IMG/VR virus record: IMGVR_UViG_3300048597_000634
Location: 62,001 to 126,000 of that record
Reading direction: 5' to 3' (one strand)
Length of the DNA: 64,000 bases
Part shown: in pieces, positions 26,098 to 46,948 of the stretch
How positions within the stretch are numbered: the stretch's first letter is position 1
Layout of the letters: every line of letters starts with the position of its first letter
Position numbers and translations under genes: made by a program
The notes under the pieces: generated by a model
Seen by the model: only the letters and a program-made list of their open reading frames with translations
Databases searched by the model: none
What the model was told of the DNA's origin: nothing

Positions 26098-26727
26098 ATG
26101 TACAACTCCAATCCACCACAATTAATAGATGTATATGGTCGGTCGGTAACTGCCGGGCAATTGAAATATACGCCCATAGTCATCCATTTCCGTCCATCGG
26201 CATTATCCCCTGATGGCTCATTTATCCAGAAGCCCAGTGAGTATTACTTGAAGATACATCCGCCGGCGGTGGTGCATCGAGGGGTGCAGAATATTATTCC
26301 AGAACCTTTTGTCTTAGAAGTGCCGCCGGATGGCTTTATCCGGTTACAGTTAGCGTCTAGTGCCGCCGAGTTGCCCAATGGTCATTACATAGTAGATTAC
26401 CACCGTAAAGGGGCGCGGGCACCGTTATTAGCCCAGCGGTGGCTAATCCCTGAGTTTGACGGTATGGAGTCTAGCCATGATTTTGTTTATACCGGGGCTA
26501 ATCCTTATGAGTTGCCTACTAATGTGTGGTTGGTGAGGTCAGTGGGGTCGAATGGTAATAATGTGTGGAGTTCTAACTATAATGTGTTGACTTGGCCTGG
26601 TGAGACACCGGTGCCTGGGGAGTATGTGCGCGTTGTATTTCAGCCAGCGCTGACTTTAGCAGATATTGTAGATAGCGACGATTTTGGGTTTGAGTCAGCT
26701 AAAGACTTAACTCGACGGCGTGCCTGA
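26098..26727 (+). CDS. Hypothetical protein
   Basis: 209-aa beta-rich ORF between terL and the giant gene. Confidence 0.55.
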   Translation: MYNSNPPQLIDVYGRSVTAGQLKYTPIVIHFRPSALSPDGSFIQKPSEYYLKIHPPAVVHRGVQNIIPEPFVLEVPPDGFIRLQLASSAAELPNGHYIVDYHRKGARAPLLAQRWLIPEFDGMESSHDFVYTGANPYELPTNVWLVRSVGSNGNNVWSSNYNVLTWPGETPVPGEYVRVVFQPALTLADIVDSDDFGFESAKDLTRRRA

Positions 26728-26771: not shown

Positions 26772-29700
26772 ATGGCCGGGACTTTTGGGTATACCAGCGT
26801 CAATAATGACCACCAACTGAAGTTTAATGTGCCTGATCGGTTTAGTGCTAGTAGAACCGGTCAAGTACGCCCTGAGTCTGGCTCTAACCCCTACGTTGTA
26901 TATAGTGAGACCCACACAGTCTTTAATTTAGAGCAGTCCTTATCTAGATTTAAGCGAGGCACTGTAGAGACGGATAACTTTCTAGTTACTGCGCCCCCCG
27001 ATAGTTTCTTAGGGTGGGCTTTGGGTAAAACAGAAAGTCAAGTGTTGGCTAAACAGGGTGTTACTAGGGTTCAACAGAGTGAGTTCTCTTTTGGGGCTAA
27101 CAAGAGTAAAATACATGTCCCTGCTGAGACTCAGGGCATAGGCAGGCTTAGATCCTTTCTAGAACGAGTCAATCTTAATGGTGAGCCCCCTTTAGTTTCT
27201 GGCGCAGGTGTAGACCCTAACGTCCCTAAAGAGATTGAACAAAAACTAGCTCACTTTAAGATCACTACTGGAGATATAGATGCTGCTGCTCTAGGTCAAT
27301 ATGAAGGTATAACAGATGGTAACAATAGCCCAGTAGAAGCACCGACTAAAGTGGCAGTCCAAACTACTGCCATGTACGGCAACTATCAATTCCATGGCAC
27401 TTGGGGTATTGTTGGTGGCGCCCTATCGTTTAAACGTGATAGCTCAGGCATAACTGACTTAGGGCGTGGGGCCTACACTCAAGGCTATATGGACACTTCT
27501 ATCCACATAGAAGACCCTAGATATTTACGAATGGTCGATGACTGGAGTAAGGATAAATACGCCACTAGAGGAGTATTTAGAAGTGAAGACTATTCAAAAG
27601 AAGGTCAAGAGAAGTTAGAAGGCGTAAAGCTACTTCGTAACGTATCTATACATGAGGAAGCTATACGAGAAACAGCCGCTTATATTGAGGCGTTAAGTCC
27701 TCGCTCAGCCACTGCAGAACGGTTATCTGAAGGTAAGCAGATAACCAACAAAGATTTAGAGAATATCCGTAAAGAGTATGCAGAAGACTTAGAGGTTATT
27801 CAGTCTGATATGCAGGCGGCTGGCGCCATGTATTACATGAGTGGTCCGGCTATGGGTTACAACGAGACTAACTTGTCTGATAACACTGTAGCTGGCATAC
27901 GACGTCAACAAGTAAAGCAAACCCTAGACCAAATAGAGACTCTAAAGCAGCTGGGTATTAAGCCGGTCATTCATACAGATATTAACCGGATGGATATAGA
28001 TACTGGGTCTAAGCGCCGTCTGTTAGAAGAAGCCTATGTGGTTCAAACTCATACCTTTTTTGGGATGAGTCAACAGCAGGCCCACCACAACGTATCAGGG
28101 TTAGTAATCCCTAACCTGGACATAGACTCTCAGGCTGGTAGTAGGCTCAAAGAAGCAGGTTTAGCGTCGGAAAGCGGTCTGGCAGGATTTATAAGTTTGG
28201 GTACCGCCCGTTTGATTGGCTCCTTTGCCTATGAGATGGGTATCCAAGTAGATCTTGACGCTGCGCCAGACTCCTATGTTGACGCTATTATGGGGTCTAT
28301 TGGTCGGACATTAAACGTGGGGGCAGTATATCGTCAGCGTAAAGACGCTGCTTACCAAGGTCCCAGCGGCGCTGACTTATCATCTTTTTATAAACCCACG
28401 TATAGAGACGTAAGGAGCGGCAACTTCCAGGAGATTGGGTTACTACCAGTCATGCCTAATGAGATGCCCGACGATTTCTTTGAATACTACGGCGGGCTAT
28501 CCACCCGTATCTACTCCGATAGATACCAAGCTTTATACGGCACTAAAGCCACAGGAATGCAAGGTCACGTCTTAGAACGATTAGACGCCAAGCTAAGCGC
28601 GCCCGGCTTTGGTATGGGGCTCAACCAACTATTCCGACAAGACGATTTATACACCCCAGGACAGGGTTTAGCCGGCTTCCTAGCTACTAGTATTGGTAGG
28701 GTATTCGATACTGTTAGCGGGCATTATACGATGCAACGCATTAAGAAACAGCACGACGGGGATTTGTCCGGCTCTTTAGGGGAATACCAACAGAAGATTA
28801 TTGAGCAGGAACACTTCAGGGCTATAGAGCAGCGGGGCTTCTTTGAGAACTTATTCAATACCTTGACGACTACTATTGCCGATACGTCGCTGTCTATGGC
28901 TAGTTACTTTGGGGTTACTCACGCCTATAGTATTGCCAAAGCACAAATCGAAGACGCCGGTTCCAAACATATCCTTGATGTCGTTACTGGAGCAGTGGGC
29001 GAAGGTAAGGCACATACTAGTATCTTGATGTTAACTGGGGGGCACTCCAAGTTGTTTGAGGAGGCTAATCAGTTACATGAGTTGATGGACAAAGTCGGAG
29101 GCTTCGATAGCATTAAGTCTGCTTCATCACTTGGTGATTATCTGTTAGCCGTACAAGACTTCACTTCTGGGCAAGATGTAACTATAGCTGAGGGCGCTAC
29201 TGATAGCGTTTTTGGGTGGTATAAGAAAAAGAAAGATGTTGAAGGATTTATGCGGACTCCTACAGGCCCAGGCGCTGCACCAGTGTCAGCTTTAGGAGAG
29301 CAACAGCTGTTCGACTTTCTAGACGATATTTATAATGTAAAGCCCGGCTTGGACGATGACTTAGCCAGTCTAGTTAAAAAGAAATTAGGGCAGGCTAATA
29401 CAAATAGTATTGACCCAGCTGCCTTAAGGAAAGCTTACGCTAAAGCATTAGAGGAGATGGGTATAACTATAAACTTGCCTACTTCAGGTAACGCTCATGT
29501 AAGCGGCAGCGTTGAGTTAGCTAGGTCACTGGATAATGCTAATTCTGGTGCGATTCACATGCCAGATGCCGTTGGCTTTAGGAACATTAGGGCGGTACGC
29601 CGGCTAGACTCAGCCAATCTAACTAATATGTTCCTGCCGTTCTTAGATAACGCGGTAGACCTATCAACAGAGGCTAGTAAGGAAGGATATCTAAAGGCTC

Positions 29701-32700
29701 GGGAACAGCTAGTTGACTTAGCCCGCGCCAAACCTGTTCTAACCTTTGACTCTAGTGTCCAAGGTGAACACACCAATAAAATTCTCCACTACGGTTATGA
29801 TCGGCTAACGGACTTGGCCCGTACCTTCGACGACCTGGCTCAATACTTACCCGCCTATCCTCTACTATGGATTAAGCCCATACGAGACGCATTTAACCGC
29901 TATGAGTTAGCCCAAGGCAAAACTAAAGATGACATTCTTGGTACTAGACGCTCTTTTAGAGATCTAATCGGCCCGGGCTTTACTGGACTACTATCTTTAC
30001 AAGGGGAAGTAAGTAGAACCATAGGCAGCATAGCCCAAGTAGGTGTAGGCAAATATGTGACTAACACCTTGGAGGTGTTTAAACTACAAGGTCAGGCTTC
30101 TGTTCTAGAAGCTAAGATAGCTAACTCATTTAAAGAGTCATATAAGTTTATTGCTCAAGTTCACGGTGCCGCCAACAACGTTAACTTCGATGACGTACTT
30201 CAGGCATTTATAGATAGGCTACAAGATCCTAAAAAAAGCGGGATTAATCAACAAGACTTTGAGGAGTTAGCGAAGTTACATTCAGAAATAAGCCTGAAGA
30301 TTAATAAGACCCCAGGCTTGAAATACTCTACTGGGCATAACGAATTAGGGGCGCCTGGCGAGGACTCTTATGCCGGACTAAGGAAGTTCTTATTCAGTGC
30401 TGGTGCGGTGCTAATCGCTGACCGCATTATCGACCACTTCTTTATTAAGCCCCAAGGAGTGGACTTAGGCGATAGTCTAATGAGCCATATCTTCGGGACT
30501 GTCAGCCCTGAAGTAGAAGGCAGAGAAGAAGACGCTAAGGTATTAGCTGGCTATAGTCAAAACTATAGTCATACGGCGCCGGCTATATTCAAATATCCGG
30601 CAGCTACTGCAGGGTACGCCATAGGTGGTCTAGTTTTCCCTTCTGTATACCACCAAGCCAGTCATCTAAAGTATTGGACTTCTGCTACTAAGGGTAAGCA
30701 GTTCACCTCCGACCAAGTAGAGTTGGTCACCCAAGTAGCGTCTGGCATCACCCAGGGGTTACAAGGTATAACACCTAACGCTACTAAAGAGCAATTAGCC
30801 GAGGCGTTTGCTAAGGGTAGTGCTAATGCCTTTGCAGGGTCTAATAAGTTACGCTTTGGTTATGCCGGCGCTTTTGTGGGTGCATCCTTAGCACTATTAG
30901 CTACCCAAGCAATTACATCTGTAGTGGCTTCCACTTTAGAGCCACTGGTAGCCCTAGGGGATACAGCATTCCGTGGTCGTTGGCATGACCCCCGTAAAGG
31001 TTTAGAACTAGACCCGATTAAAGGTAGTGCGGCAGCCATATTTGCTAAAGCGCATAGACAAGGGGCTGCTAGGGCAGCAGCGTTATCTCAGAGGGCTGAG
31101 GCTCGTGGTGGTAAGGCTGGAGATTATATGGATTATACGTCTAGGGGAAGTATGGTAGTCGCCTGGCTATTATCCTCCTCTATGACGGTAAGCGCCCAGC
31201 AACCAGGTAGATTATTCTATCCATTTGCTACCCAAATAGCCGCGCCGTTCTACCAGTTCGCCATGGTAGGTAAGTTAGACCCCAGCTCTAACCAGATTAC
31301 TATGCAGTCTGGTTTGCAGCTGTTCCCACTATCTGGGGTGGGCTTTATGGTGCCGTCTATGTTCAACCCAGCTACTAAATACACCCCATCTATCGCCGAA
31401 CAATTCCTCATCAACCAATTAACAGACCTTACTCCCGGTATGAACCAACGGGCGTTAATCGGTGATGACTCCGACGTAGAGCAACGAAAAGAAGCCTATT
31501 CACTGTTAAAGGCATCGTCTGGGATATTATCGCTGGCGCTAGGGTCAGGGCTTAACCCTACGTTTGACTATAGACCGGTGATGTTTATTGGTGGGCTTAC
31601 TGCTTTACAGTCTGCAGAGCAGGTATTAGGTAAGTCTGTGGGCAGATTAAAGCCCGACTCTGCTTTATATAAAGAGCTGAAGAATTACGAGACTGTTTAC
31701 TCTATCGCGAGTATGGGGCTAAACGTAACAGATAAGTTAACACGAGGGGCGTTTTCTTTAAGCCTCACAGGAGTTAATTACCTAACTCACTCTATTACTG
31801 CCTTCTTAGGGCGCGGGGAATTGTCCTTATTTAAGGCAGGCCCCGCGGCTAGGAAACTAATGCCGTTTTATCTGAGTGCTATGTTAGTGGCGGGTATGTT
31901 ACGTCCTGGACAGACTACCACTGAACACCAAAGTGATCACATAGGCTCTTTGATTGAAAACCTTACGGAAGGTAATACTTTTGGTGCAGTGCGGTTAGAG
32001 CAAGACCATTTGACTAACTATGTGCTGGCTACGGCTATCGGGTCGGCGGGTTTTGGTGGCGCCCTTACTGCTTCAGGAGCATTTGAGAACGTAGCTGACT
32101 GGGCTAATGAGGCTGGTACGGGCTATATAGGTCTTAAGAAGCAAGAGATGTACAAGACTTACTTGGAGCATCTAGGAAAGATAGGTGTCTCTGTAGATGA
32201 TGCTGCTGATTTTAGAAAACAGTTGATGGTCAGCATTAAGCGTGGCGAGAACGTAACCACCCTATTATCCCAGGTTAACCGCCAGCAATTACCGCTATTA
32301 CAGTCCGGTGCCGCCCGCCTTGGTATGGCTTCTAGGGTCTTAGCCCCTATACTCTTAGGGTCGTTTGTGGCGGCTCAGTTCTTATCTCTGACGGACTTCT
32401 ATGACCACTCCAACCCAGTCAGTTACTTATTAAGGGGTCTTACTGATACTGGTCGTGGCGCTCAGATGACCTATGAACAGAAGGCGATGCTTTCTAACTT
32501 AGGCATTAAGGGTGCCAGATACCAACCCAAGAACGTAGGCGAGGCAGTCTCGAACGTAGGGGATTATCTCTTAAGGTCAGTATTCTTCATGGGTAACCCG
32601 TCTAAGTCCATGGGGACTTACCAGGATGCGCCGTCGCCGTTCTTGGGATTAGGCGGTCCTTTTGGGGTATCTGGTCAGCAGGATATGATGAAGTCCTATA

Positions 32701-35700
32701 TGCAGTCTCAGTCGGTGGCTGCTGACGTTAGTGGATCATTTTACTTAATGCCTGCTATGGCATCTGAGTTTAATAACGCTAAGTCCTTAGGTCCCCTATT
32801 AGCCGCCGCCCAGCGTAACCCTAACCTGACTGACTCTAGGGCAGTAGCCCTATACCGAGCCACGTTGATGCGTAAGTCCAGGGCTACGTATAAGAACAAT
32901 ATTAGTGCAGGTGAGTCTGCGGCTATTTCTAGCCCTACATTACAGATTGCCATTGGGCGCCGCTCAGATGAAGTAAGACGTCTTGCTTGGCAAACCGGCG
33001 AGGGTCATATGTTAGACCTGTTGACCACTATGGCTGCCGCAGGTCGGATTAAAACAGAGGCCACTACCAACTTTATTAGTAATGCCGGCGCTACTATATA
33101 TGACTTTGTGGGTAATAACTTCAGAATCCAACCTACTAACATCGCTGGTAATCCTGTTAGGTTTAGTATCCAGACTAATGCTGAGTTCGCCCGGGCTATG
33201 TGGACTATGGCTAAGGGCAGCAATACTCAGACTGACATCAACACGATGTTATATGACTCTGAGCGGGTACAAGACGCTGGGCCCAATCCTGTTACAGGGT
33301 ACTTCGGCAATATCATGAGTTACGCCTTTGGTACCTTTTATGACCGTACCTTAGATGAGTATGGCCCGAGCTTCCACAATATATTGCCCGCCGCCGCCCT
33401 AGCATTTAGTGCAGTGGGCTTAAGCGCCATGTTGACCGGTACGGCGATAACTTCGGTTGTACAGGGTATTGGGGCGCTAGGTGCCTTACAGGTGTATGGA
33501 ACGCTGGCCGACTCTGCTCGTAACTTAGACCAAGCGAGACAGAACGTCACTCATGTTATACAAAGCACTTCCTATGGCATCGGGCGCGATAACAAATTAA
33601 TGAAGCAAGTTGGCTCAGTGATGTCTGAGATGGATATGACCGGGGGCGTAACCGAGGAAGCCATTACTGCCTTAAATAGTGTTTTTGGTAAACGCAACCA
33701 AGTTGGTAGTTTAGGTAAGTTCAGTAACTCCCTAGCGGGTAAGGCCAGCCAACTAGCCTCTATGTCTGCTAGTAATACTAACGATATAACGGAGGTACTG
33801 CGGCAGATTAAAGCGGACTTCAACGATAGCGTTGAGGGTCTTCAGAAAGGCTTCAACATGTCAAACGACGCTTTCAAAGAGATGTTAGAGGGCATATTTG
33901 ATGCGACTGATAGCACTTTAGTAGCCGGCATCAATAATATTCTTCGCAACATGCCTCTGGAAGAAACCCGCCGACAAGAGATAGAAATCCTATTGTTGCA
34001 GCATATGCAGAATAATATGGACCCCTTGCGTAATACGTCGGGGTTTAAGCTGACTGATGCCGCCCCTAGCGATAAGTCTCGTATTGTTTATAACTCTCTA
34101 TCTGACAAAAAAACCATGAGCGCTAGCTCTGCGTTTATCAATACAGTATTAGACCAAGAAGGGTACTCTGGACTATTTAAACGGTCTACGGGAGGGCTAT
34201 TCCGGGCATCTTTTGCCATGTTTGATATGAAAGCTGCTTATGAGTTTGCCAGCTTTGCGGCGGCTTCCTCTGACCCTATGGATGAATTAGAACGCCGTCG
34301 GTCCTCTTATGCTGCCGCTGCCAGTCTATTCCAAACATTCGGGATGATTATCCCAGGTCAGGTAGTATTAGGCACCTTAGCTAAGAACCCGACCTTAGCT
34401 GTAGCAGCTATGGTCGCTGCGGTAGGTATTGGTAGTGTTGCCTATGCCAACAAGGGTTTTCGTAAAAAGGTCAGTAACTTCTTCAAGCCGAAGTTTAAGT
34501 GGGCAGACCGTAACATAATTAAGCCTACTATTAGGTCTATTGCCAGTGCTTTAGACGCAGTGGGAAGTATTGGCGCTGTCCAAACTATGCTATCTCCAGT
34601 ACGGGTTATTACCTCAGGCTTAGATCCTATGTTTACGAATATGCGGCGTAGGGCGGCGCGCATACCTGGGGTTAACTTCATAGCTGACATGTTCATCCCT
34701 GAGACCAAAGAATCGTTCTACGACCGGTGGTCTGAGCAGACACCCACTATGACCGCCTATGGTCCCCGCATGGAGTTATACACCCGTGCAGAGATAGAAC
34801 AAGACCGTAAGAATAGGATTGAATCTCGGCGACGCCGGGGCGGTCAATTAAACGCTGGCATTAGTGTTGAGTTAATGTCTGGATTCCTACAAGGTAGACC
34901 TGATTCTACTGAATTAGGTCGTATGAGGTTAGAGCGTTTAACCAAGGGCGCTGGGCGGGTAGCCAGTGAGCACATAGGGTATAGCTATGTAAGCCCCCTA
35001 ATTCATTTAGCGGTTAAGCGGCGTCAACAAGAGATAGACTCCTATGGCAATGCTCTACTTGGCCCGTTGGTTCCTGAGACTAGGGGGTCGGCGGCGCCCA
35101 TATTGTCTTTGTCAACTAGTGTTATGCGTTATAGCTTGCACAGCACTGGCAGTTTAATTCAAGCGCCTATGGATGTGGCAGGTAAGGGGGCGGCCATAAC
35201 CATAAAGTCTTTTGCTTGGCTGAATGACGCCTTTACTAAGGTGAAAGACAGTAAGTTAGTATTTGGTCTTATTGGGGGTGCTAAGGCAGCTCCTAATAAC
35301 CAAATGTTTACCTGGGCTGCCGCCGGCGTGATCGGCTCATCTATCTTGGCAGACCGTTTAGGTTGGACTCAAAAAGAAGATAAGAAATGGCAAACTGCCG
35401 GGCTGGTAATTGGGGCAGGCGCTACAGCGGCGGTGGCCAGACCCTATGCCGGCGCCGCCTTTAATATGCTAGCTGACCAAGATAACTTTGCCGGTAAGAA
35501 TATTCGTAAGCTACGTCGTATAAACATGAATGCCATTACTGACCTGGCGGTTAAGGTCGGTATGGGCGGTCTTAAATGGACTAAGGGGTTATTTAGTCAC
35601 GCATCACAGTGGGCAAGGACTCAATCATGGTCTCGCATAGCGGCTAATACCGGGTATAGTGGCGCTGCTATTGTCGGGGCAACAATGTTATTAAGCCCGG

Positions 35701-38700: not shown

Positions 38701-41700
38701 CGGGGGCGAGTTATTTAGTTAAGCGTATTCGTGAATACCATAAAACAAAGAAAGCCAAAGAAGCTTTAGAGAGTAAGCGACCTGGTGCTTCTCCTGATGT
38801 AATTAATAATACGTCAGATGATGGTGATGTTGGGCGCGGTGGCGGGACGGATGACGCTGGTGGCGACGGAGTCCTTAGCCCCAGACCCGGCGGGGGTGGG
38901 GACGGTGGTAGTGTAGGTCCTGCACCTACTTTGAAAGATGCTGATGATAGAGCGTCTACTAGAGCAGTTTTAGACACCAGTAATACTTCTATGTCTACTG
39001 AAGAAGTGAAGGCGGTCATGTCTAGAGGTAATGTTTCTGTAGAGCAGTATGAAGGTAAGTCTAAGTCTCTACAAGAGTACCATTCCGAGAAGATAGAAAT
39101 TTACGATAAGAAGATAAATGCGTTAAATACTGAGAGATCAGCGTTGTCAGCAGAAATAGACGGCTTAATTACAGAAAGGCTAAGGTTAGATGACGCGTAT
39201 CAAAACTCGTCGGTTACCGGCGGTAAAGAGGTGTATGAAGCTATAGAAGCGTCACATAATGCCTCATTGAAGCAGTTAGACGATAAGTTAAAGCAAGTCG
39301 ACCAGAGAATAGTAGAGATTGACCGTACAATAAACGCCCATAGTAAAGGGAGGGTCGCGTCTCAAACTATCATTAGTGAGTTGGGTACTGCGTATACTAT
39401 CAGGCACCAGCAGTTTAATATGCCAGCGCCCGCACCCGACCTGGTAATAACTCCACAACCTTCTCCGACAGTTGTCGGCCCCCAGCCTACCCTAGAGCCG
39501 CCTGTAAGCCGTGGCGGAACTACAGTAGCTCAACCTGTTATGCGTGGGCGGAATGCTATTGTCACTGATCTTGGTGACGGTACTGTGAGAAAGACATTAG
39601 TGCCTGACGGACCTAACCCACAGATAGCTAACAATATTCAAGTTGAGGCTGCGATACAACGTAAAATGGCCATCTTTGGCGTATCTCCAGACGTAAGGTC
39701 AGTTAACGTAGATTCTTTTGTCATGCGTAAAGTTACAGGGCACGCAGTAAGTCCTCTAACTGGAGAGGCTCTAACAGCTTCTAGACTAATAGCGGCTAGA
39801 AAGTTAGCTTTATTACATAGTCTGGGTGTTGTACACGGTGATGTACACTCTGGCAACATACTTACATCACCAGACGGCACTAAAGCTACGGTTTTAGATT
39901 ACGGTTACTCTAGATTAGCCAGTGTAGAAGAAGCTTACTCTATGCTGAGCGACAATGTAACCGTAGATAGACTCAAGAATAATGAATTTACGTCTAGGCC
40001 TATGGCTGACGGGTCACTGGGACCTCGTACAGTTGGGTCTGACCTGTCTGGGCTAATCAATATGTCTGGGTCTGACTCTGAGGAAGTATTGAAAGTATAT
40101 AAAAGTGAAATGGACCGTCACCGGCGTATGCCTGATAGTGACAATGTCTTTAAACTAAATGAGTTGGGACTACCTCCTGAAATAGAAGCCCAGGTCAAAT
40201 GGACAAACTCATCCGAGATAACCCTGAATAATGGTAACTTGGCATCTAGGGGTGCTGACATTGTTGAACCTATCATTGCACAACCCCAACAATCTACTCA
40301 GGCTAGTAGACCTATTACTAGTGCCCAAGAGATAATTAATAGATCGGGCGGTGGGTCTTCTGTGCCTACTACACCTCAACCCTCAATAGAATCTCATGTA
40401 AAGCTTGGTAGCGGGTCTACATCCTCGGCACCCAACCCAGTTATCTCCCAACCAGAACTCTTGGATACTGATAATAAAGTGGTCGGCGCCCCTGTAGAGC
40501 CTGACCAGATTGTAGCTAAGGGCGGTGCTAATATGGTGAGTCCAATGCCATCACAAAATCTTGGTACCACTACTAACCCCTTACCTAACGTATCCAACTA
40601 CGATAACAATGTAGTATCTAATCCTTTAGACCAGACACCTAGTGGTTTAAACAAGCAGCAGCCTGGCGGTTACATAAACCTAGGCTCAGACTCTATCAGA
40701 CCTAATGACCCAGTCACTATCATAAGTCGGTCTGGGCGCGGTCTCGTAGGTAATGCCATAGACTCCGTTAAAGAAGCAGATTGGCAAACCCGCGGCACCT
40801 ACGCTAGCAACACTGTTAGCGCTGGTATGGCTACCTTTAACCTCTACCGAGGTGTCACTACCTTAGCTAAGAAAAACACCACAGGCTTTGAAAAGTCCTA
40901 CGGGTTTGAATACTTAAGTCAATCTGGCGCTGGCTACGCTACTACTTACCTCACCATTAAAGGCGGGCTTAAAGCGACTAAGGCGCTGCCTTACCTAAAC
41001 TATGCTAGTGATGCTATCTCATTAGCTTATGGGAGTCATCGTCTTAATACAGCTACTACTGAAGCTGAATATATTAAAGCTAAGGGGGATGTAGGCGGCG
41101 CCATTGGTGGGTTGGCCGGTAATGTTGCTGGGCAGGGTATTGGTTGGCTGGTTGGCGGTGCTATTGGTGCAGGTATTGGTGCTGTCATCGGCTTCTTTGG
41201 TGGTTTTGGTATAGGTGCCGGTGTGGGTGCCGCCGCAGGATTTAAGATAGGCTCGTCTATAGGGTCTATAGTCGGTTCTATCGCTGGCTCTATGTACGGG
41301 GAGCAAGTAGGTAGAGACTGGGTCACTAAGAATAAGTATGGTGCCGGCGATGCCGTAGAAGTGTTCGACCTTACTGGTAAATATAAGAAGACTCAGGAGG
41401 ATAAGGAGCAGCGTAGAGCAGCGTCCATGGCTAGACACGATGGCGGACCTAAAGTGTCTTATGTCAAACCGAAGGCTACTACTGGTACTAAAGCTACTGC
41501 GGTTAAGAGAGTAACCAAACCCATGAGACCTGGGTCTAATACGTCAAAGAATGGGGGAACTCGGTCTGGTGTTGATGGGCCAACGAATAATATAGTGTCG
41601 TTTAACCCGCTTAGTAACGTACCTGGGTTGGACTTGTTCTTTCCTAAACCAGCGGCGGCTAGTGATGTTATACCCACAAGCGCAAAGGTTTATACGGAAC

Positions 41701-44700
41701 CTACCCTTCCTAAAGATATCAAGAATGTAGACGTTGATGTAACATCACGGTCTTTAGAATCTAAGACCCAGGAAGAAAAGGAAGAGATAGAAAATAAGCA
41801 GTGGTATGAAGGGCTCTTTGAAGGGCTGGCAGCAATGGGTCGGAATATGACCAATACCATCAACAAGGCAGCTGAGTATGTAGGTGATTTAATTGGCGAC
41901 GCCTGGAATTTTGTGACGGGTGGGGGCGCTGACGCTACCTTTGCCGATGGTAAGTTTAGCGGAAGTATGGCTCCGTTGTTTAACCTCATTCATAAATATG
42001 AGTCGCCTGGCGCCGGCTTTGATGCGTTAAATCCTTCTACAACGGGTACTGCTGTGTATGGTAAACCTCTAACTGAGACTACTATCGGAGAGATTATGGA
42101 TAGGTCTCCACGAGGTGGCGGACGCGCCAGTGGTATGTTTCAGTTTATGCCTTGGATTAATGGCAAAGAAGGGACGCTATATAGCGCCATGAAAGCTGCA
42201 GGTTATACCAGAGACACAGTCTTTACTGCCGAAGTACAGACTAATATGGCCATTAAATTTTTGCCTAAGCACAGACCTGAATTATGGGCGTATTTAACAG
42301 GTAAGTCTGACAATATCAACGCAGCTATGGATGACTTTGCTCGTGAGTGGGCTGCATTCCCTAACTCTAGAGATACAGGTGCTTATTCAGGACAACGTTC
42401 TGCTGGATTTGAAGAAACCAAGCAGGCATTAATAGAAACTCGTAAGTTAGTTATGGCTTCTGGCTCTGCGGAGGCAGGGTTTCAAACTGGAGCTGCTAGA
42501 GTAGGGGGCGTAGTTAAGACTAACGTGAAGACTATTCGTGATGGGGGTGGCACTCCTTATCACATTGATATGATGTTTGACCGAAGCACGTCATGGGAAC
42601 AAAGGGTTCAGGTTTTTGACCAACTAGCCGCTGGTTATGCTGCAATGGGTCGTCGCATTGAGTTTAGTAATAGTGCTGTTTCTGGTCTTGTATACCGAAC
42701 TAATCTTACCCAGAAGCAGAAAATCGACATGTTAAAGCGTGTAGAGTCTGCTCATAGTAATAGAAAAGGTGGTAGCGGTCGTGCCGCCATGGACTTTTTT
42801 GTCCCGCAAGAAGGTCATGCTAGATGGACAGGCGGACCAGCCACTAGCGGCTCAGGGGCTAACGTTGAGTATTTATTACCGGTCATTGAAGGTGGTTATT
42901 ATACTGTGGGTGCCAAAGGTCGTTCAGGTCAACATATTCAAGCTTTTGATGCTAGTGGTAAGAAGATATATGAGTTCTTTCACGGTGGTGGTGGTCAGCA
43001 AGGACGATTTAATTTTTCTGGTGCTGGTAGCGGCGGCTCTATGCCACAAGCAACACAACAAAATAGACCGCCCCATCCTCTCACTAGAGGTGAAAAGAAA
43101 GTTACTAGTGGCACTACCGGAAAAGGTCAATCAGGCAGTGTTACCCACTTTAAATATGAAGAATACACAGGCAAACGGGTAAGCGTTGGTAACAACCAAA
43201 CTATGGCAGAGCCCGCTGCCATCGCATTTAAGAAAATGCAAGAAGCCGCCGCTAAAGAAGGCGTAACGTTACAAGCTCGTAGTGGCTTCAGGTCAGTTAA
43301 AGAACAAGGAGAGGTCTTTAAACGAGGCCTAGATAGAAGAGAAGGCAATGTTTACGAAAATACTTTATATATTGCCCCTGCCGGATATTCAGAGCATGCC
43401 ACGGGTTACGCCATCGATATTACGGGTACTCTCAGTGAAGGTCTAACTGCTGCTGTAGCTGATACCGCCGCCGGCAAATGGTTGGCAGCTAACTCTGCCA
43501 AGTTCGGCTATCAAATGTCTTTCCCTAAAGGAAATGCCGACGGCGTCACTTATGAGCCTTGGCACTTTAGGTTTATGGGTGATTACTACGAAGGTAGTGA
43601 ACCTGATACGTCTACTGACGGAGTTTATGTACCCAGTGAGGGTGGTAGTATAACTCGACAACGACCCCAACGACGAAAAGTAACTTCCTGGGCTGAGCGG
43701 GAACGTCGTGCACAAGAACGCATTAAGTCTGGTCAGGTTAGGCGTGAAGTTAATATCGGAACACCAGCTAAAAATAATGGTGTACGTCAAGGCGGTGCCA
43801 AGGTACAGACTAAAGCTGAAGAGCTGCCCAAGAATATTCAGACTAATGATGTACCTGCCATGTCTAATGACCGTCGTGGTGTTAGTGGCTCTAGCGGGGG
43901 CTCGGGCGGAGGTGGTGGCGCCGGGGGCGGTAGTTCTGTAATAAGTGGACCCGTTTACACTCAGGGAGATTTAGGGTCTCCGGGAGCATTCCACTTTGAC
44001 ATCAAACGAGTCGAAGGCGGGTTTTATGAACGTGATTACCTAGACAATTATGTCCAAGTAAATGGTAAGCCTATAGGCACAGGTATTACAGTTAAGGGTG
44101 GAGAGTACGGAGCCCCTAGGTCTTACGGTGGTCATGGTGGCTGGGACTATGCCTTTGGGGATAAGAATGCCGGGCTTAGTCTTGTTAATGGTGCCCGCTT
44201 AATCAGCGTTACACCCACTAAGACCTATGGTGATAAGCTAATATTCCAGCTTCCTACTGGAGAACAGTTCGCTATTATCCATGGACGAGCTACTGCCTTG
44301 GGTAAAGATTCCGCTGGAGCGGAAGGAGCATATGCTCAAACTGATGGCTCGGTCAGTTTGGCTAGTGGCGGTGGGGGCCGTGGCGGTTACAGATATATGC
44401 AGCCGCCTCGTAGAAAAGTCACTTCCTGGGCTGAGCGAGAACGTCGGGCTCAGGAACGTATTAGATCTGGTCAAGTTGTAAGGCAGTCTTACGTTACTAA
44501 CCCAAGTAGAACCCGTAATAACCAAGTGAGACCCGGCGGCAACATTACCCAAAGCGGCGGCGGTTTTGGTTGGTTAAAGCTACCTTCCTTCTTTAGACCG
44601 CAATCTACTAACCAAGACAAAGTTTCAGCGATATATGAACCTGATGCTAAACGTAATGCTCGCCAGAAAGACTTACTCAAGACTATTCCTTCTAACCAGA

Positions 44701-45116
44701 AAGACTTAGACGTAGATGAAATCCTTGACACTAAGGTTACCCAGGCTTCAGATGAGGCTATGTCTAATGCAGAGATTATCGGTAATGTAATCGCTGAGGC
44801 GGCGGCCAAAGCCTATAAACAAAAACAAGAAGCCACCCCAGAAAAAGCCGTTCATCATATTACTAACGTCCAACGTCCGGCGGAGACTGCCCTTAACGTT
44901 AACAGCTACTCGCGGGCCATCACCAGTAACATTACCCGTGCTACTAAAACACAAACTGTTTATCAACCGGACAACGACCAAAATGTTATCTTGGTCAGCT
45001 CTCAAGTAGACCACACTATGGTAAATGTCAATGTGGCTAACAGTGGAATTAAATCGCCGTGCGGGTGGCAGATGGCGGGTAAGAAACAAAGAGTACAGGG
45101 ACCTTGTGTTGCCTAA
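26772..45116 (+). CDS. Giant (6114 aa) tape-measure-like/ejected polyprotein with PLD-like, kinase-like, muramidase, M15 and M23-like domains
   Basis: 18.3-kb uninterrupted ORF with a long Ala/Gly-rich amphipathic/hydrophobic core. Kinase motifs HGDVHSGN..DYG; lysozyme-like YES..ASGMFQF..AREWAAFP; VanY/M15B SGFRS..SEHATGYAID..YEPWH. Confidence 0.75.
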   Translation: MAGTFGYTSVNNDHQLKFNVPDRFSASRTGQVRPESGSNPYVVYSETHTVFNLEQSLSRFKRGTVETDNFLVTAPPDSFLGWALGKTESQVLAKQGVTRVQQSEFSFGANKSKIHVPAETQGIGRLRSFLERVNLNGEPPLVSGAGVDPNVPKEIEQKLAHFKITTGDIDAAALGQYEGITDGNNSPVEAPTKVAVQTTAMYGNYQFHGTWGIVGGALSFKRDSSGITDLGRGAYTQGYMDTSIHIEDPRYLRMVDDWSKDKYATRGVFRSEDYSKEGQEKLEGVKLLRNVSIHEEAIRETAAYIEALSPRSATAERLSEGKQITNKDLENIRKEYAEDLEVIQSDMQAAGAMYYMSGPAMGYNETNLSDNTVAGIRRQQVKQTLDQIETLKQLGIKPVIHTDINRMDIDTGSKRRLLEEAYVVQTHTFFGMSQQQAHHNVSGLVIPNLDIDSQAGSRLKEAGLASESGLAGFISLGTARLIGSFAYEMGIQVDLDAAPDSYVDAIMGSIGRTLNVGAVYRQRKDAAYQGPSGADLSSFYKPTYRDVRSGNFQEIGLLPVMPNEMPDDFFEYYGGLSTRIYSDRYQALYGTKATGMQGHVLERLDAKLSAPGFGMGLNQLFRQDDLYTPGQGLAGFLATSIGRVFDTVSGHYTMQRIKKQHDGDLSGSLGEYQQKIIEQEHFRAIEQRGFFENLFNTLTTTIADTSLSMASYFGVTHAYSIAKAQIEDAGSKHILDVVTGAVGEGKAHTSILMLTGGHSKLFEEANQLHELMDKVGGFDSIKSASSLGDYLLAVQDFTSGQDVTIAEGATDSVFGWYKKKKDVEGFMRTPTGPGAAPVSALGEQQLFDFLDDIYNVKPGLDDDLASLVKKKLGQANTNSIDPAALRKAYAKALEEMGITINLPTSGNAHVSGSVELARSLDNANSGAIHMPDAVGFRNIRAVRRLDSANLTNMFLPFLDNAVDLSTEASKEGYLKAREQLVDLARAKPVLTFDSSVQGEHTNKILHYGYDRLTDLARTFDDLAQYLPAYPLLWIKPIRDAFNRYELAQGKTKDDILGTRRSFRDLIGPGFTGLLSLQGEVSRTIGSIAQVGVGKYVTNTLEVFKLQGQASVLEAKIANSFKESYKFIAQVHGAANNVNFDDVLQAFIDRLQDPKKSGINQQDFEELAKLHSEISLKINKTPGLKYSTGHNELGAPGEDSYAGLRKFLFSAGAVLIADRIIDHFFIKPQGVDLGDSLMSHIFGTVSPEVEGREEDAKVLAGYSQNYSHTAPAIFKYPAATAGYAIGGLVFPSVYHQASHLKYWTSATKGKQFTSDQVELVTQVASGITQGLQGITPNATKEQLAEAFAKGSANAFAGSNKLRFGYAGAFVGASLALLATQAITSVVASTLEPLVALGDTAFRGRWHDPRKGLELDPIKGSAAAIFAKAHRQGAARAAALSQRAEARGGKAGDYMDYTSRGSMVVAWLLSSSMTVSAQQPGRLFYPFATQIAAPFYQFAMVGKLDPSSNQITMQSGLQLFPLSGVGFMVPSMFNPATKYTPSIAEQFLINQLTDLTPGMNQRALIGDDSDVEQRKEAYSLLKASSGILSLALGSGLNPTFDYRPVMFIGGLTALQSAEQVLGKSVGRLKPDSALYKELKNYETVYSIASMGLNVTDKLTRGAFSLSLTGVNYLTHSITAFLGRGELSLFKAGPAARKLMPFYLSAMLVAGMLRPGQTTTEHQSDHIGSLIENLTEGNTFGAVRLEQDHLTNYVLATAIGSAGFGGALTASGAFENVADWANEAGTGYIGLKKQEMYKTYLEHLGKIGVSVDDAADFRKQLMVSIKRGENVTTLLSQVNRQQLPLLQSGAARLGMASRVLAPILLGSFVAAQFLSLTDFYDHSNPVSYLLRGLTDTGRGAQMTYEQKAMLSNLGIKGARYQPKNVGEAVSNVGDYLLRSVFFMGNPSKSMGTYQDAPSPFLGLGGPFGVSGQQDMMKSYMQSQSVAADVSGSFYLMPAMASEFNNAKSLGPLLAAAQRNPNLTDSRAVALYRATLMRKSRATYKNNISAGESAAISSPTLQIAIGRRSDEVRRLAWQTGEGHMLDLLTTMAAAGRIKTEATTNFISNAGATIYDFVGNNFRIQPTNIAGNPVRFSIQTNAEFARAMWTMAKGSNTQTDINTMLYDSERVQDAGPNPVTGYFGNIMSYAFGTFYDRTLDEYGPSFHNILPAAALAFSAVGLSAMLTGTAITSVVQGIGALGALQVYGTLADSARNLDQARQNVTHVIQSTSYGIGRDNKLMKQVGSVMSEMDMTGGVTEEAITALNSVFGKRNQVGSLGKFSNSLAGKASQLASMSASNTNDITEVLRQIKADFNDSVEGLQKGFNMSNDAFKEMLEGIFDATDSTLVAGINNILRNMPLEETRRQEIEILLLQHMQNNMDPLRNTSGFKLTDAAPSDKSRIVYNSLSDKKTMSASSAFINTVLDQEGYSGLFKRSTGGLFRASFAMFDMKAAYEFASFAAASSDPMDELERRRSSYAAAASLFQTFGMIIPGQVVLGTLAKNPTLAVAAMVAAVGIGSVAYANKGFRKKVSNFFKPKFKWADRNIIKPTIRSIASALDAVGSIGAVQTMLSPVRVITSGLDPMFTNMRRRAARIPGVNFIADMFIPETKESFYDRWSEQTPTMTAYGPRMELYTRAEIEQDRKNRIESRRRRGGQLNAGISVELMSGFLQGRPDSTELGRMRLERLTKGAGRVASEHIGYSYVSPLIHLAVKRRQQEIDSYGNALLGPLVPETRGSAAPILSLSTSVMRYSLHSTGSLIQAPMDVAGKGAAITIKSFAWLNDAFTKVKDSKLVFGLIGGAKAAPNNQMFTWAAAGVIGSSILADRLGWTQKEDKKWQTAGLVIGAGATAAVARPYAGAAFNMLADQDNFAGKNIRKLRRINMNAITDLAVKVGMGGLKWTKGLFSHASQWARTQSWSRIAANTGYSGAAIVGATMLLSPAVDDFLGWGEDPKKENDRKLLDRRRMTAIGVTAGVSLLARLGATWKPNLAGSAVNKVGGSVTRLATFGVSTLAVFKLSKVVMANQITGFGFNTAFNVGYGLLNLEDDAQGRAKAQAYEATTSTIAFGLTVGYAYNVYGKELINKARGIAPTHVGWAAFRHNVKSGLKNIFTPVTFGAPYWGQIRGLLGGGWNAVYNSNNLAGRALRPTGRYLGMAKDMLPKLPPGWNEPVNKFFGRKINWLINAQNAANPTKAQYAAFDAEQIGLREPARKLAIKKWGTVASHAAKLTPLIMDTATIAAAHHRYTKVDPKDHLGNYKEAYRAYYQSSAMTAVSSVLSAISGGDKKVGLVSTLLTTTQVSDIAGRMAEEWATKDLYSGRLLTEQRAGQDSYFSPESAAGVGALTLSAAATASYYKVGVFKSARWDKTANFMATHAGQVAQTAITAYNWQDTWRAGRQRYSGTNPNYIAAQRSSDLGKGALYAAAMLSLASKNPSSGGKNLALRTAGVVTFTAAAMAMDNTESYFAKQHTLAVREAGIRDVYVKNLIQREAAESTLGYGAAGAAIAGLTVASLLAFKGKGTPFWSKASYALLSAATGGSAASFFGHQWQLNKGIQKYKDGITPEQYLERQRWIDNGAYTPDSWRNTDQNRMQWLLWNTDSVNARNQVRRGRTGAAIGLGNLSSSYVTPDMIAAAQDRELRARYGQPITFTSTVQFVGGATILAANTFRYEKGLGAVGVTFRQHIKPTATLFDTVAGSAKDMSLWQKGKSIGGSTLNAGFQALPLMSYYFAAQGAKEQITKHSGRYSSGRMTTAQYLQATALSRRAYMARSEALYDAYLPGSSSIMRSIISGVAFGAAKGALSGVLDSKAIDDERRWIERNKEGLNLSSLNLAKANRASRKYLTGGSGTDKVVGLATGVTTLSINLSAGFITGGPVGIFTGLITSIVPGLQNQAIAKANISRHRARNVLLEKGNEVGHEGILDDLSGIGADGYGMMALNMGISSGASYLVKRIREYHKTKKAKEALESKRPGASPDVINNTSDDGDVGRGGGTDDAGGDGVLSPRPGGGGDGGSVGPAPTLKDADDRASTRAVLDTSNTSMSTEEVKAVMSRGNVSVEQYEGKSKSLQEYHSEKIEIYDKKINALNTERSALSAEIDGLITERLRLDDAYQNSSVTGGKEVYEAIEASHNASLKQLDDKLKQVDQRIVEIDRTINAHSKGRVASQTIISELGTAYTIRHQQFNMPAPAPDLVITPQPSPTVVGPQPTLEPPVSRGGTTVAQPVMRGRNAIVTDLGDGTVRKTLVPDGPNPQIANNIQVEAAIQRKMAIFGVSPDVRSVNVDSFVMRKVTGHAVSPLTGEALTASRLIAARKLALLHSLGVVHGDVHSGNILTSPDGTKATVLDYGYSRLASVEEAYSMLSDNVTVDRLKNNEFTSRPMADGSLGPRTVGSDLSGLINMSGSDSEEVLKVYKSEMDRHRRMPDSDNVFKLNELGLPPEIEAQVKWTNSSEITLNNGNLASRGADIVEPIIAQPQQSTQASRPITSAQEIINRSGGGSSVPTTPQPSIESHVKLGSGSTSSAPNPVISQPELLDTDNKVVGAPVEPDQIVAKGGANMVSPMPSQNLGTTTNPLPNVSNYDNNVVSNPLDQTPSGLNKQQPGGYINLGSDSIRPNDPVTIISRSGRGLVGNAIDSVKEADWQTRGTYASNTVSAGMATFNLYRGVTTLAKKNTTGFEKSYGFEYLSQSGAGYATTYLTIKGGLKATKALPYLNYASDAISLAYGSHRLNTATTEAEYIKAKGDVGGAIGGLAGNVAGQGIGWLVGGAIGAGIGAVIGFFGGFGIGAGVGAAAGFKIGSSIGSIVGSIAGSMYGEQVGRDWVTKNKYGAGDAVEVFDLTGKYKKTQEDKEQRRAASMARHDGGPKVSYVKPKATTGTKATAVKRVTKPMRPGSNTSKNGGTRSGVDGPTNNIVSFNPLSNVPGLDLFFPKPAAASDVIPTSAKVYTEPTLPKDIKNVDVDVTSRSLESKTQEEKEEIENKQWYEGLFEGLAAMGRNMTNTINKAAEYVGDLIGDAWNFVTGGGADATFADGKFSGSMAPLFNLIHKYESPGAGFDALNPSTTGTAVYGKPLTETTIGEIMDRSPRGGGRASGMFQFMPWINGKEGTLYSAMKAAGYTRDTVFTAEVQTNMAIKFLPKHRPELWAYLTGKSDNINAAMDDFAREWAAFPNSRDTGAYSGQRSAGFEETKQALIETRKLVMASGSAEAGFQTGAARVGGVVKTNVKTIRDGGGTPYHIDMMFDRSTSWEQRVQVFDQLAAGYAAMGRRIEFSNSAVSGLVYRTNLTQKQKIDMLKRVESAHSNRKGGSGRAAMDFFVPQEGHARWTGGPATSGSGANVEYLLPVIEGGYYTVGAKGRSGQHIQAFDASGKKIYEFFHGGGGQQGRFNFSGAGSGGSMPQATQQNRPPHPLTRGEKKVTSGTTGKGQSGSVTHFKYEEYTGKRVSVGNNQTMAEPAAIAFKKMQEAAAKEGVTLQARSGFRSVKEQGEVFKRGLDRREGNVYENTLYIAPAGYSEHATGYAIDITGTLSEGLTAAVADTAAGKWLAANSAKFGYQMSFPKGNADGVTYEPWHFRFMGDYYEGSEPDTSTDGVYVPSEGGSITRQRPQRRKVTSWAERERRAQERIKSGQVRREVNIGTPAKNNGVRQGGAKVQTKAEELPKNIQTNDVPAMSNDRRGVSGSSGGSGGGGGAGGGSSVISGPVYTQGDLGSPGAFHFDIKRVEGGFYERDYLDNYVQVNGKPIGTGITVKGGEYGAPRSYGGHGGWDYAFGDKNAGLSLVNGARLISVTPTKTYGDKLIFQLPTGEQFAIIHGRATALGKDSAGAEGAYAQTDGSVSLASGGGGRGGYRYMQPPRRKVTSWAERERRAQERIRSGQVVRQSYVTNPSRTRNNQVRPGGNITQSGGGFGWLKLPSFFRPQSTNQDKVSAIYEPDAKRNARQKDLLKTIPSNQKDLDVDEILDTKVTQASDEAMSNAEIIGNVIAEAAAKAYKQKQEATPEKAVHHITNVQRPAETALNVNSYSRAITSNITRATKTQTVYQPDNDQNVILVSSQVDHTMVNVNVANSGIKSPCGWQMAGKKQRVQGPCVA
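43671..44477 (+). repeat. Internal duplication RRKVTSWAERERRAQERI.SGQV (69 bp x2)
   Basis: Copies at 43671-43739 and 44409-44477, differing mostly at synonymous sites. Confidence 0.9.
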
Positions 45117-46318: not shown

Positions 46319-46948
46319 TTAGTCTGGTAGAGGACATGCCTGCCCTTCAAATTTACCTGCCTTTATTTTGTTCCAGAATCCTCTTCCTGGACGAGGGACA
46401 CCATACTTTATACACTGCTTCTTAACTGCCGTATCGCTGACACCTAAAGCCACAGCAACATCAGTTATTGGTTTATCCCATATTTGTTTATGTAGGTTAA
46501 GTCTAGCCTCTTCGTCGTCTTTGATTTTTATTACAGATTTAGACTTTGCTGCACAGGAATGGGAGCAGAATTTTTGCTCTCTTTTGCCTCTCCTTACACT
46601 CGGGGCAAATGCTGCACCGCAGCAGGGGCATATCTTAGTGGGCTTTTCTCGACACACATAAGTACCGTCAGCTAAAAGTAATAGTTCCCTAGATTCAGGG
46701 TCTAAGTTGTGAAAACGAATGTGGTCACCGTTTGTTTTAAAGACAAGGAGATTATCTATGTCATTATTCTCCTTATTCTCATCTATATGGTGAACAGTTT
46801 CCCCGGGAGCTAGAGGGCGTCCCAGCATAATTTTTGCAGCCTTTCTGTGTATATAATCCAATCTACTTTCTTCCTGATTAAAGTAGTAAAAATAGCCAGC
46901 CCGCTTTGCTTGTTCAACCATAGATGTTAGTAGGTTCGACTCTTTCAT
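46319..46948 (-). CDS. HNH homing endonuclease with Zn-finger and HTH
   Basis: YIHR...LGRPL...ETVHHIDENKENN...NL...H motif; CPCCG..FCSHSC; C-terminal VAVALGVSDTAVKK HTH. Confidence 0.9.
   Translation of the reverse strand: MKESNLLTSMVEQAKRAGYFYYFNQEESRLDYIHRKAAKIMLGRPLAPGETVHHIDENKENNDIDNLLVFKTNGDHIRFHNLDPESRELLLLADGTYVCREKPTKICPCCGAAFAPSVRRGKREQKFCSHSCAAKSKSVIKIKDDEEARLNLHKQIWDKPITDVAVALGVSDTAVKKQCIKYGVPRPGRGFWNKIKAGKFEGQACPLPD

Follow-up and report, generated by a model that had tools for sequence, protein, structure and literature searches.

Several phage systems in which large proteins leave the particle with the genome, or meet the cell wall at entry, have been described. In phage T7, gp14, gp15 and gp16 are stored in the capsid, are expelled unfolded through the tail and form a trans-envelope conduit, with gp16 carrying a lytic transglycosylase domain. 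Tail tape measure proteins with muralytic domains are also established, examples being Pb2 of T5 and proteins of mycobacteriophages and staphylococcal phages. A precedent for an ejected giant protein is the N4 virion RNA polymerase of ~3500 amino acids (aa) (PMC13434306), and the Dar system of P1 shows that very large multi-enzyme proteins can be packaged in the head of a contractile-tailed phage and injected (PMC12810830, PMC5512222). Polyvalent proteins have been described from phages and conjugative elements (Iyer et al. 2017, J Bacteriol, PMC5512222); those of phages have their genes close to the late virion genes, and the domains found in them include kinases that lack the C-lobe as well as lysozymes and DD-peptidases, the latter two serving “to breach the peptidoglycan barrier”. 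Here the analysis concerns a giant open reading frame (ORF) in IMG/VR virus record IMGVR_UViG_3300048597_000634 (G000), located in a window of 64,000 nucleotides that corresponds to bases 62001-126000 of the record and is numbered from its own first base. We favour, with moderate confidence, the view that its product is a virion-delivered polyvalent ejection protein. Carriage in the virion and expulsion from it are predicted because of the late structural context of the gene, its strict linkage to a packaging gene and the avoidance of cysteine in the protein, and also because of the presence of baseplate-related wall hydrolases, membrane-active-looking segments and host-directed modules at both ends. 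The gene itself is as follows.

26772..45116, + strand: giant ORF, 6114 aa, ~657 kDa, two cysteines; collinear homologs in the related IMG/VR contigs G001, G002 and G003

The coordinates and length proposed in a first-pass annotation of the window (26772-45116, 6114 aa) were reproduced, the 6114 codons being free of internal stops, and the protein is rich in Ala, Gly and Ser. The public gene call, P0001, is 6031 aa long and places the start 83 codons downstream of 26772; the ATG at 26772 is the likely start since G001 shares the N-terminus MAGTFG.... An open frame of 18.3 kb at 46% GC could not have arisen by chance. That the ORF might be an assembly chimera, a refuting condition which the annotation itself had named, or a spurious frame has a negligible probability: nothing was found in its favour, 18.3 kb run without a stop, GC content and GC skew are even along the whole ORF, and conservation is collinear at the protein level in three independent IMG/VR contigs and 29 database clusters. 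As far as sequence comparison allows, a chimera is refuted and the ORF is a real gene.

Record G000 is a single contig of 205,544 bp, classed as a provirus in IMG/VR and with a CheckV completeness of 91%. A search for public sequencing runs returned none. A block of genes on the + strand starts with portal, prohead protease, major capsid protein, a sheath protein of 1198 aa and a probable tube protein, continues with two unknowns of 572 aa and 537 aa, a 611-aa protein with a gpV/gp5-like OB-fold start and a VgrG-like spike, and ends with gp25-like and Baseplate-J proteins, fibres, a DUF285 protein, the large terminase subunit (TerL), a 209-aa gene and the giant ORF. On the 3' side of the giant ORF and on the opposite strand are an integrase-like gene, an HNH protein, ribonucleotide reductase (RNR) subunits and a PD-(D/E)XK nuclease. 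In this gene order the giant ORF closes the block of late structural genes of a jumbo phage or prophage with a contractile tail, and it falls outside the canonical tape measure slot between the tube and the baseplate hub. The two genes immediately upstream are the constant companions of the giant ORF.

24299..26077, + strand: large terminase subunit, upstream synteny anchor (phrog_17415, E 1e-20; phrog_2, E 1e-19)
26098..26727, + strand: 209-aa partner gene, always between TerL and the giant ORF (alignment and synteny)

No family of Pfam, PHROGs or NCBIfam matched the 209-aa partner, for which an alignment of seven contexts showed 24 invariant columns; a function as chaperone, adaptor or loading factor is conceivable. 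TerL, of 592 aa here, is split by an intein in two relatives (L001 8330-12730, 1466 aa; L016 6109-9288, 1059 aa), and the intein-bearing TerL of one of the two includes a LAGLIDADG domain.

Searches made with the giant gene or its product returned very little. Among 50,697 deposited phages, no similar DNA was found by megablast of the ORF and no match by tblastn of aa 1-2800, a word-indexed search of 5.8 billion proteins gave no full-length relative beyond the protein itself, and an IMG/VR scan with the giant protein gave nothing. The ESM Atlas feature search (aa 1-2040 and 2041-4080) showed low recognition, with viral hypothetical proteins only. Relatives were reached through an IMG/VR search with the neighbouring TerL, which led to three contigs (G001-G003), each with TerL, then a gene of 206-219 aa, then a giant open frame. 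The homologs measure 6943 aa in G003 (a record of 216.5 kb, 96% complete), 7866 aa in G002 and at least 4659 aa in G001, where the contig end cuts the gene. The first ~4000 aa are collinear, with 64% identity to G001 (over 4000 aa) and ~30% over ~3000 aa to G002 and G003, and the remaining 2000-3800 aa of the giants form a mosaic among relatives. An exhaustive profile search with aa 1201-2250 against 1.84 billion representative proteins recovered 29 clusters only, all of giant proteins (1789-7866 aa). In distant members the same order was seen, namely TerL (often with an intein), a gene of 180-220 aa and the giant gene, followed on the other strand by genes for RNR, a nuclease and HU. Judged from these comparisons, the family has a three-part plan of an N-terminal nuclease-type module, a conserved core and a recombining C-terminal cargo, and its members, of ~3500-7900 aa, occur in a clade of jumbo (~190-216 kb) contractile-tailed phages and prophages.

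The conserved core and the elements recognized within it are listed below.

28209..38771, + strand: family core, aa ~480-4000, mostly long helices (conservation profile, profile search and AF2 model)
30870..30932, + strand: weakly hydrophobic segment 1, aa 1367-1387
31215..31355, + strand: beta-meander motif 1, aa 1482-1528, YxFAxQIxxPFFQ...DP...GxQLxPxLGxG (invariant columns; model strands 282-328)
32319..32396, + strand: weakly hydrophobic segment 2, aa 1850-1875
32616..32735, + strand: beta-meander motif 2, aa 1949-1988, YxDxPxxF...GPxGxS...YxQxQSxxxDxSxS (invariant columns; model strands 749-788)
33378..33452, + strand: weakly hydrophobic segment 3, aa 2203-2227
34389..34454, + strand: weakly hydrophobic segment 4, aa 2540-2561
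37365..37424, + strand: weakly hydrophobic segment 5, aa 3532-3551

The ~3500 aa of helical and hydrophobic sequence described in the first-pass annotation correspond to this core and its five segments, which are Ala/Gly/Ser/Thr-rich, conserved in position across the family and of a mean Kyte-Doolittle hydropathy of 1.1-1.6. An AlphaFold model of aa 1201-2120, based on a 29-sequence family alignment and of moderate confidence (predicted local distance difference test, pLDDT, 67; predicted template modelling score, pTM, 0.51), predicts bundles of 30-40-residue helices together with two beta-meanders, the latter being the most conserved motifs. Profile searches of the PDB with three core blocks found no relative among solved structures. 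Comparison of the core model with the PDB gave no significant match by Foldseek (best E 0.13), and by VIA-wide a best Z of 7.2 for a generic helical hairpin, below the noise level of the tool for helical models. Fold searches against BFVD (best E 0.03), AFDB clusters (best E 0.02) and the ESM Atlas (template modelling score, TM, at most 0.2) were likewise without significant matches.

The Ala/Gly/Ser-rich composition, long helices and weakly hydrophobic segments of the core are also those of a tail tape measure protein, which would lie in the tube lumen, set the length of the tail and bring C-terminal peptidoglycan hydrolases to bear at entry, as is known for tape measures with muralytic domains. 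No gene in the window matched any tape measure family, which would leave the role vacant, and the nominal top BFVD matches include tape measure and minor tail proteins, at chance level (E >=0.03, TM <0.1). The position of the gene argues otherwise, since the ORF sits after the fibres and TerL and the slot from tube to hub and spike is filled by the 572-aa and 537-aa genes, the product of the former having a coiled coil at its N-terminus. The giant protein itself has no match to a tape measure model in Pfam, PHROGs or NCBIfam. At ~0.15 nm per residue, moreover, lengths of 6114, 6943 and 7866 aa would give tails of ~0.9-1.2 micrometres, which is implausibly long, although this is a plausibility argument, and the tails of close relatives would differ by hundreds of nm on account of enzyme cargo and not of the helical ruler. 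Nuclease modules and a kinase are not tape measure features either. A tape measure role is therefore unlikely, and the comparison with muralytic tape measures drawn in the earlier annotation fails on gene position and family models.

At the N-terminus, upstream of the core, a module derived from phospholipase D (PLD) was recognized by way of the family.

27069..28211, + strand: PLD-derived module, aa ~100-480 (PLDc_2 at the homologous position in 14 of 25 relatives)
27252-27275, + strand: first HKD motif, His-x-Lys (H161, K163), kept; second HKD motif lost

Pfam searches of the N-terminal regions of 25 members identified PLDc_2 in 14 (best E 1.3e-18), SNase in three (3.6e-21) and EEP in one, and these modules, present in 18 of the 25, were counted as host-directed. 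The same searches gave no N-terminal nuclease match in the giant protein or its five closest relatives. When the family is aligned, His161-x-Lys163 coincides with the first HKD motif, a position at which 20 of 25 sequences have H-x-K; the Asp of this motif is not conserved (D/E/L/L), and the second HKD motif (HxK...GSxN) is absent from the giant protein and its five closest relatives. With one HKD motif of two and a score below the Pfam gathering threshold, the region shows shared descent without full membership of the PLD family. The PLD-like region proposed from the sequence of the protein, a call which had rested on one motif with a chance expectation of ~1 in 4, is thus upheld by descent (the column of the first HKD motif and PLDc_2 in 14 relatives) but is undetectable in the protein alone and lacks the second motif. 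The module appears eroded in the giant protein and its activity is doubtful. The occurrence of three unrelated nuclease or phosphodiesterase folds in one slot points to a nucleic-acid- or phosphodiester-directed role for the N-terminus of the family.

The C-terminal third, aa ~4000-6114, carries the variable cargo, in the following order.

39039..39371, + strand: coiled coil, aa ~4090-4200, start of the variable cargo (crude heptad score; missing from G002 and G003)
39549..39971, + strand: truncated Bud32-like kinase, aa ~4260-4400, no C-lobe (beta3 Lys in xRK, alphaC Glu, HGDVHSGN, DYG)
40263..40694, + strand: Pro/Ser/Thr/Gln-rich linkers, aa 4498-4641
41124..41306, + strand: glycine-zipper hydrophobic hairpin, aa ~4785-4845, GxxxG runs at 4789-4823 (phrog_22557, phrog_14537)
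41955..42446, + strand: lysozyme or lytic-transglycosylase-like domain, aa ~5062-5225 (invariant Glu5077, GMFQF motif)
42507..43001, + strand: Region A, aa 5246-5410, invariant His, His, Asp, His; distinct conserved domain of an unnamed family
43200..43580, + strand: VanY / M15B D-Ala-D-Ala carboxypeptidase domain, aa 5477-5603 (SEHATGYAID and EPWH motifs)
43659..43811, + strand: basic ~50-aa repeat, copy 1, aa 5630-5680
43944..44351, + strand: Region B, aa ~5725-5860, orphan, HGGWDYAF (HxxxD-like)
44397..44555, + strand: basic ~50-aa repeat, copy 2, aa 5876-5928, 60% identical to copy 1
44889..45113, + strand: C-terminal tail, aa 6040-6114, loose family pattern, with the only two cysteines (CGWQMAGKKQRVQGPC)

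Most of the cargo elements named in the first-pass annotation were recovered in this analysis: the coiled coil by the crude heptad score, the Pro/Ser linker at aa 4498-4641, the glycine zipper at aa ~4789-4823, the kinase-like domain and the M15B domain. The kinase motifs (beta3 Lys, alphaC Glu, the HGDVHSGN loop and DYG) are invariant in all three carriers, G000, G001 and P0010. A profile of these three sequences matched more than 2400 solved kinases, with a best E of 1e-8 (PknB, PAK4 and GCN2), the matches stopping just after DFG. Bud32 was the nearest NCBIfam family (E 8e-8, 31.9 bits vs a cut-off of 125), and the Pfam scores of 20.4 and 17 bits compare with cut-offs of 23.2 and 31.7. The domain therefore has the Lys, Glu, HxD(x)4N and DFG elements of a kinase, is truncated past its DFG-like motif without a complete C-lobe (APE), and stays below the curated cut-offs. 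The glycine zipper has a counterpart in one relative with a Gly-zipper_Omp match, and weak Phage_holin_3_6 matches were found in two relatives.

Among the wall-active domains, VanY is the most clearly assigned, with 117 bits in Pfam vs a cut-off of 25, a match to PDB entry 4mph (1e-19) and the motifs at aa 5540 and 5595. The lysozyme-like domain had no Pfam match; tblastn connected it (E 5e-10 to 1e-7) with cyanophage proteins that bear the annotation lambda lysozyme or amidase. The family alignment showed an invariant Glu5077 and a GxxQF motif, and one weak PDB match (E 0.004) was obtained. The muramidase of the earlier annotation is a candidate domain, supported by the similarity to cyanophage lambda-lysozyme proteins and by the invariant Glu. 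A single-sequence AlphaFold prediction of the C-terminal 1200 aa was unusable (pLDDT 36). The two M23-like calls of the annotation, for Regions A and B, were not sustained: no Pfam Peptidase_M23 match was obtained in protein or six-frame searches, and the C-terminal 1400 aa are without any HxH motif, Region B having HGGWD only. Region A, which no test identified as an M23 peptidase, is a different conserved domain, shared with six family members and also present in the gp5-position protein of cyanophage S-WAM2; in profile searches it had no Pfam, PDB or stand-alone relatives. It may represent an uncharacterised, putative metallohydrolase domain that is shared with cyanophage baseplate proteins. 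Region B, for which no homolog was found even among family members, resembles M23 in its HxxxD-like motif only. It is flanked by the two copies of the basic ~50-aa repeat (RRKVTSWAERERRAQERI...), beyond which the giant protein has no internal repeats.

In 13 of 25 family members the last 1500 aa include Peptidase_M23, and the cargo further comprises VanY, beta-lactamase-like, RlpA-type double-psi beta-barrel (DPBB), SleB-like, phage tail lysozyme, SLT, S11, SprT-like and glycine-zipper domains. A HExxH zincin motif occurs in nine relatives (mid-protein in P0010, P0021, P0022 and P0024-P0027; SprT-like at aa ~7283-7345 in G002). Despite unrelated cargo upstream, the extreme C-termini of family members have a loose pattern in common, in which ...(A/S)NG... 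comes after a short beta-like stretch.

The nearest outside relatives of the wall-degrading domains are virion-associated wall hydrolases, the gp5-position proteins of cyanomyoviruses (P29B0810_009 of S-WAM2 and SSZBM1_66, “lambda lysozyme”, of S-SZBM1), which share the lysozyme-like and Region A domains at ~30% identity. These proteins differ in being 780-850 aa long and encoded among baseplate-hub genes, at the position of T4 gp5, and the similarity covers ~330 aa of cargo only. The resemblance of cargo domains to cyanophage proteins, together with CP12 carried on the contig of one distant relative, suggests that the hosts are cyanobacteria.

Six-frame searches of the genome for Amidase_2, Phage_lysozyme, Amidase_3, GH25, Peptidase_M15_4, Peptidase_M23 and SLT were negative, so that VanY in the giant ORF is the sole recognisable peptidoglycan hydrolase in the 205-kb genome. 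This finding favours a role of the protein as a lysis factor, or a dual role, in which a holin-like glycine zipper and the wall hydrolases would destroy the sacculus from within when infection ends. The glycine-zipper hairpin lies just upstream of the hydrolases, late expression would fit, and the weak Phage_holin_3_6 matches in two relatives are in line with it. The apparent absence of an endolysin is, however, weak evidence, as the record is 91% complete and cyanophage endolysins are often unrecognisable. Lysis would give no part to the ~4000 aa of conserved N-terminal sequence, the nuclease modules or the kinase, endolysins are small and of no such size in any precedent, and the outside relatives of the hydrolase domains belong to baseplate-associated proteins and not to lysis cassettes. 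We consider a role mainly in lysis, or a dual role, to be unlikely.

The cysteine content sets the protein apart from the rest of the proteome (1.17% Cys), with two cysteines observed vs 71 expected (P 1.7e-28). Both are within the last 20 residues, where they bracket a 16-residue loop at the extreme C-terminus, and other family members have 0-3 cysteines in up to 7866 aa. Such depletion is expected of proteins that are threaded unfolded through a narrow channel or that work in an oxidising compartment or outside the cytoplasm. A second giant ORF, of 5341 aa (G000:C1:35305-51330, - strand, outside the window), is divergent and adjoins the portal gene; it has no cysteine vs 62 expected (P 6e-28), no Pfam match and no hydrophobic segments, and it is kept in G001 (5186 aa), G003 (5113 aa) and G002 (at least 3079 aa). 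A third, of 3186 aa (G000:C1:13169-22729, - strand, also outside the window), ends in a Dda-like helicase (phrog_325, 2e-40), is normal in its cysteine content and may be a DarB-like polyvalent protein. Paralogy among the three giants was considered and rejected, no similarity being found between them; together they occupy ~44 kb, or 21% of the genome.

That a second Cys-free giant, encoded beside the portal gene, is also conserved hints at bulk structural functions for such proteins, and jumbo phages such as phiKZ have protein inner bodies. Given its place within the late structural block, the 6114-aa protein could be a virion component that is not ejected, such as an internal head or inner-body scaffold, a giant fibre or a decoration protein, with its enzymes acting from the particle surface. 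No Ig-like, collagen-like or beta-helix fibre domains were found in it, the only repeat being the basic 50-aa segment; the kinase and nuclease modules need the host cytoplasm, and the hydrophobic and glycine-zipper segments would be left unexplained. Such a component that is not ejected is improbable on these grounds. Being giant, Cys-poor and Gly/Ala-rich, with a loosely conserved extreme C-terminus and a conserved N-terminal part joined to variable C-terminal enzymes as in polymorphic toxins, the protein could also be pictured as a secreted toxin or adhesin of the prophage, such as a substrate of type I secretion, with which the lysogen would attack competitors and which would be no part of the virion. 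The provirus class of the record and the integrase-like gene abutting the ORF would suit this picture. It is nonetheless very unlikely, as a single GGxGxD motif attributable to chance was found and no repeats-in-toxin (RTX) or adhesin repeats, there are no secretion-system genes nearby, and synteny with TerL within the structural block is strict in every context examined.

Compared with the described systems, the giant protein comes closest to the polyvalent proteins. At least two domains of disparate activity are combined in it (kinase, VanY, lysozyme-like and PLD-derived), its gene ends a late block that runs from portal to TerL, its kinase is without a C-lobe and its variable part recombines in a cassette-like manner. 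Zincin modules (SprT-like or HExxH), of a kind proposed to process polyvalent proteins, are present in some of its relatives. It differs in that the hallmark MuF, DarB-type methylase-helicase, ArdC-N, ART and MPTase domains were not detected in it by Pfam, two thirds of it consist of a ~3500-aa core without known fold, and it is 2-4 times the size of typical examples. The near-zero cysteine content and the fixed N-terminal nuclease slot lie outside the published description, and the kinase lacks the published His-Asp insert, HGDVHSGN being contiguous. To P1 DarB (~250 kDa) there is a likeness at the level of the genome, as G000 also encodes the 3186-aa protein with a Dda-like helicase; DarB itself is a methyltransferase-helicase acting on DNA, without wall hydrolases and without homology to the giant ORF. 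The ejection proteins of T7 and N4, in the latter the RNA polymerase gp50 with gp51 and gp52, show no sequence or fold similarity to the giant protein, the tail is contractile here, and ejection is known there and predicted here; the protein would also unite in one polypeptide what T7 splits among three. With muralytic tape measures it has in common the helical, Ala/Gly-rich nature, the hydrophobic segments and C-terminal peptidoglycan hydrolases of a kind used at entry, and it is distinguished from them by its gene position, the absent family match, the implausible tail lengths and the extra nuclease and kinase modules.

As a virion-delivered polyvalent ejection protein, the giant protein would be made late and loaded into the particle, most likely into the head or the head-tail channel, and at infection it would be expelled unfolded through the tail, in the manner of T7 gp14-16, the N4 virion RNA polymerase or the P1 Dar proteins. 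It would thereby be a polyvalent protein of very large size. The C-terminal hydrolases would then cut peptidoglycan locally, the glycine zipper and the hydrophobic segments of the core would insert into or span the envelope, and the kinase, together with the nuclease in relatives, would act on host targets. Proteolytic processing is possible, and a membrane channel may be envisaged from the weakly hydrophobic segments and the glycine zipper. The first-pass annotation had proposed an injected and probably processed entry machine that combines a channel, wall degradation and a host-takeover effector; of this, the outline is supported indirectly by several unrelated enzyme domains, the place at the end of the late block, the avoidance of cysteine and the baseplate-type wall domains, the tape measure comparison being the part that fell away.

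A number of points weigh against delivery by the virion. Presence in the particle and ejection are predicted from sequence and context. No sequence or fold similarity was found to a known ejection protein, a portal-associated protein or a MuF domain, and to our knowledge a protein of 657 kDa would be by far the largest ejected protein known. With no separate endolysin recognised, the hydrolases could serve lysis instead of, or besides, entry. The low hydropathy of the core segments (Kyte-Doolittle 1.1-1.6) makes membrane insertion conjectural, a HExxH processing peptidase was not found in the giant protein, and its PLD module is without the second HKD motif. Neither CP12 nor NblA was found in G000.

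Other genes of the window show features of their own. The tail sheath protein (629-4225, + strand) is unusually long at 1198 aa, and sheath families match its C-terminal ~460 aa only. The DUF285 (BspA-like) repeat protein of 343 aa (21934-22965, + strand; 1e-40, with a weak PKD match) adjoins a tail fibre gene and is probably a receptor-binding accessory protein. The integrase-like gene (45113-46186, - strand; phrog_1, 7.5e-17, and a weak Pfam Phage_integrase match) is convergent with the giant ORF, whose stop codon it overlaps by 4 nt. Beyond it, a 209-aa protein (46319-46948, - strand) has both an HNH_3 endonuclease domain and a DNA-binding motif of RWP-RK-like type, and the RNR small subunit (51703-54165, - strand) contains an intein.

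Literature searches returned no description of the giant family. The strategy of a virion-carried polyvalent protein is already published; what is new, as far as the searches reach, is the family itself, its ~3500-aa core, the nuclease-core-cargo plan, the size of up to 7866 aa and the cysteine avoidance. A bolder proposal, which we regard as doubtful and put forward tentatively, is that of a single-chain ejectosome. One chain of 0.4-0.85 MDa would exit unfolded, the hydrolases and the zipper would anchor in the periplasm or membrane, the core would form a trans-envelope conduit and the N-terminal nuclease, and in some members a kinase as well, would reach the cytoplasm, so that the protein, with the 5341-aa giant, would replace a multi-protein ejection machinery and may be the only lysin of the phage as well. 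Under this proposal no larger translocated protein would be known from any virus.

If delivery by the virion holds, the size record for an ejected protein would roughly double with respect to the N4 RNA polymerase (~3500 aa), and how a contractile-tailed particle stores and threads a chain of 650-850 kDa would become a question in its own right. The family constitutes a natural cargo-swap set, in which three unrelated nuclease folds alternate at the N-terminal end and wall hydrolases and other domains, of at least ten kinds, at the C-terminal end, and the ~3500-aa core without recognisable fold and Region A provide material for further work. The wall-active domains may be useful enzymes against cyanobacterial cell walls. 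With 21% of the genome held in three giant genes, the family also bears on why jumbo phages are large.

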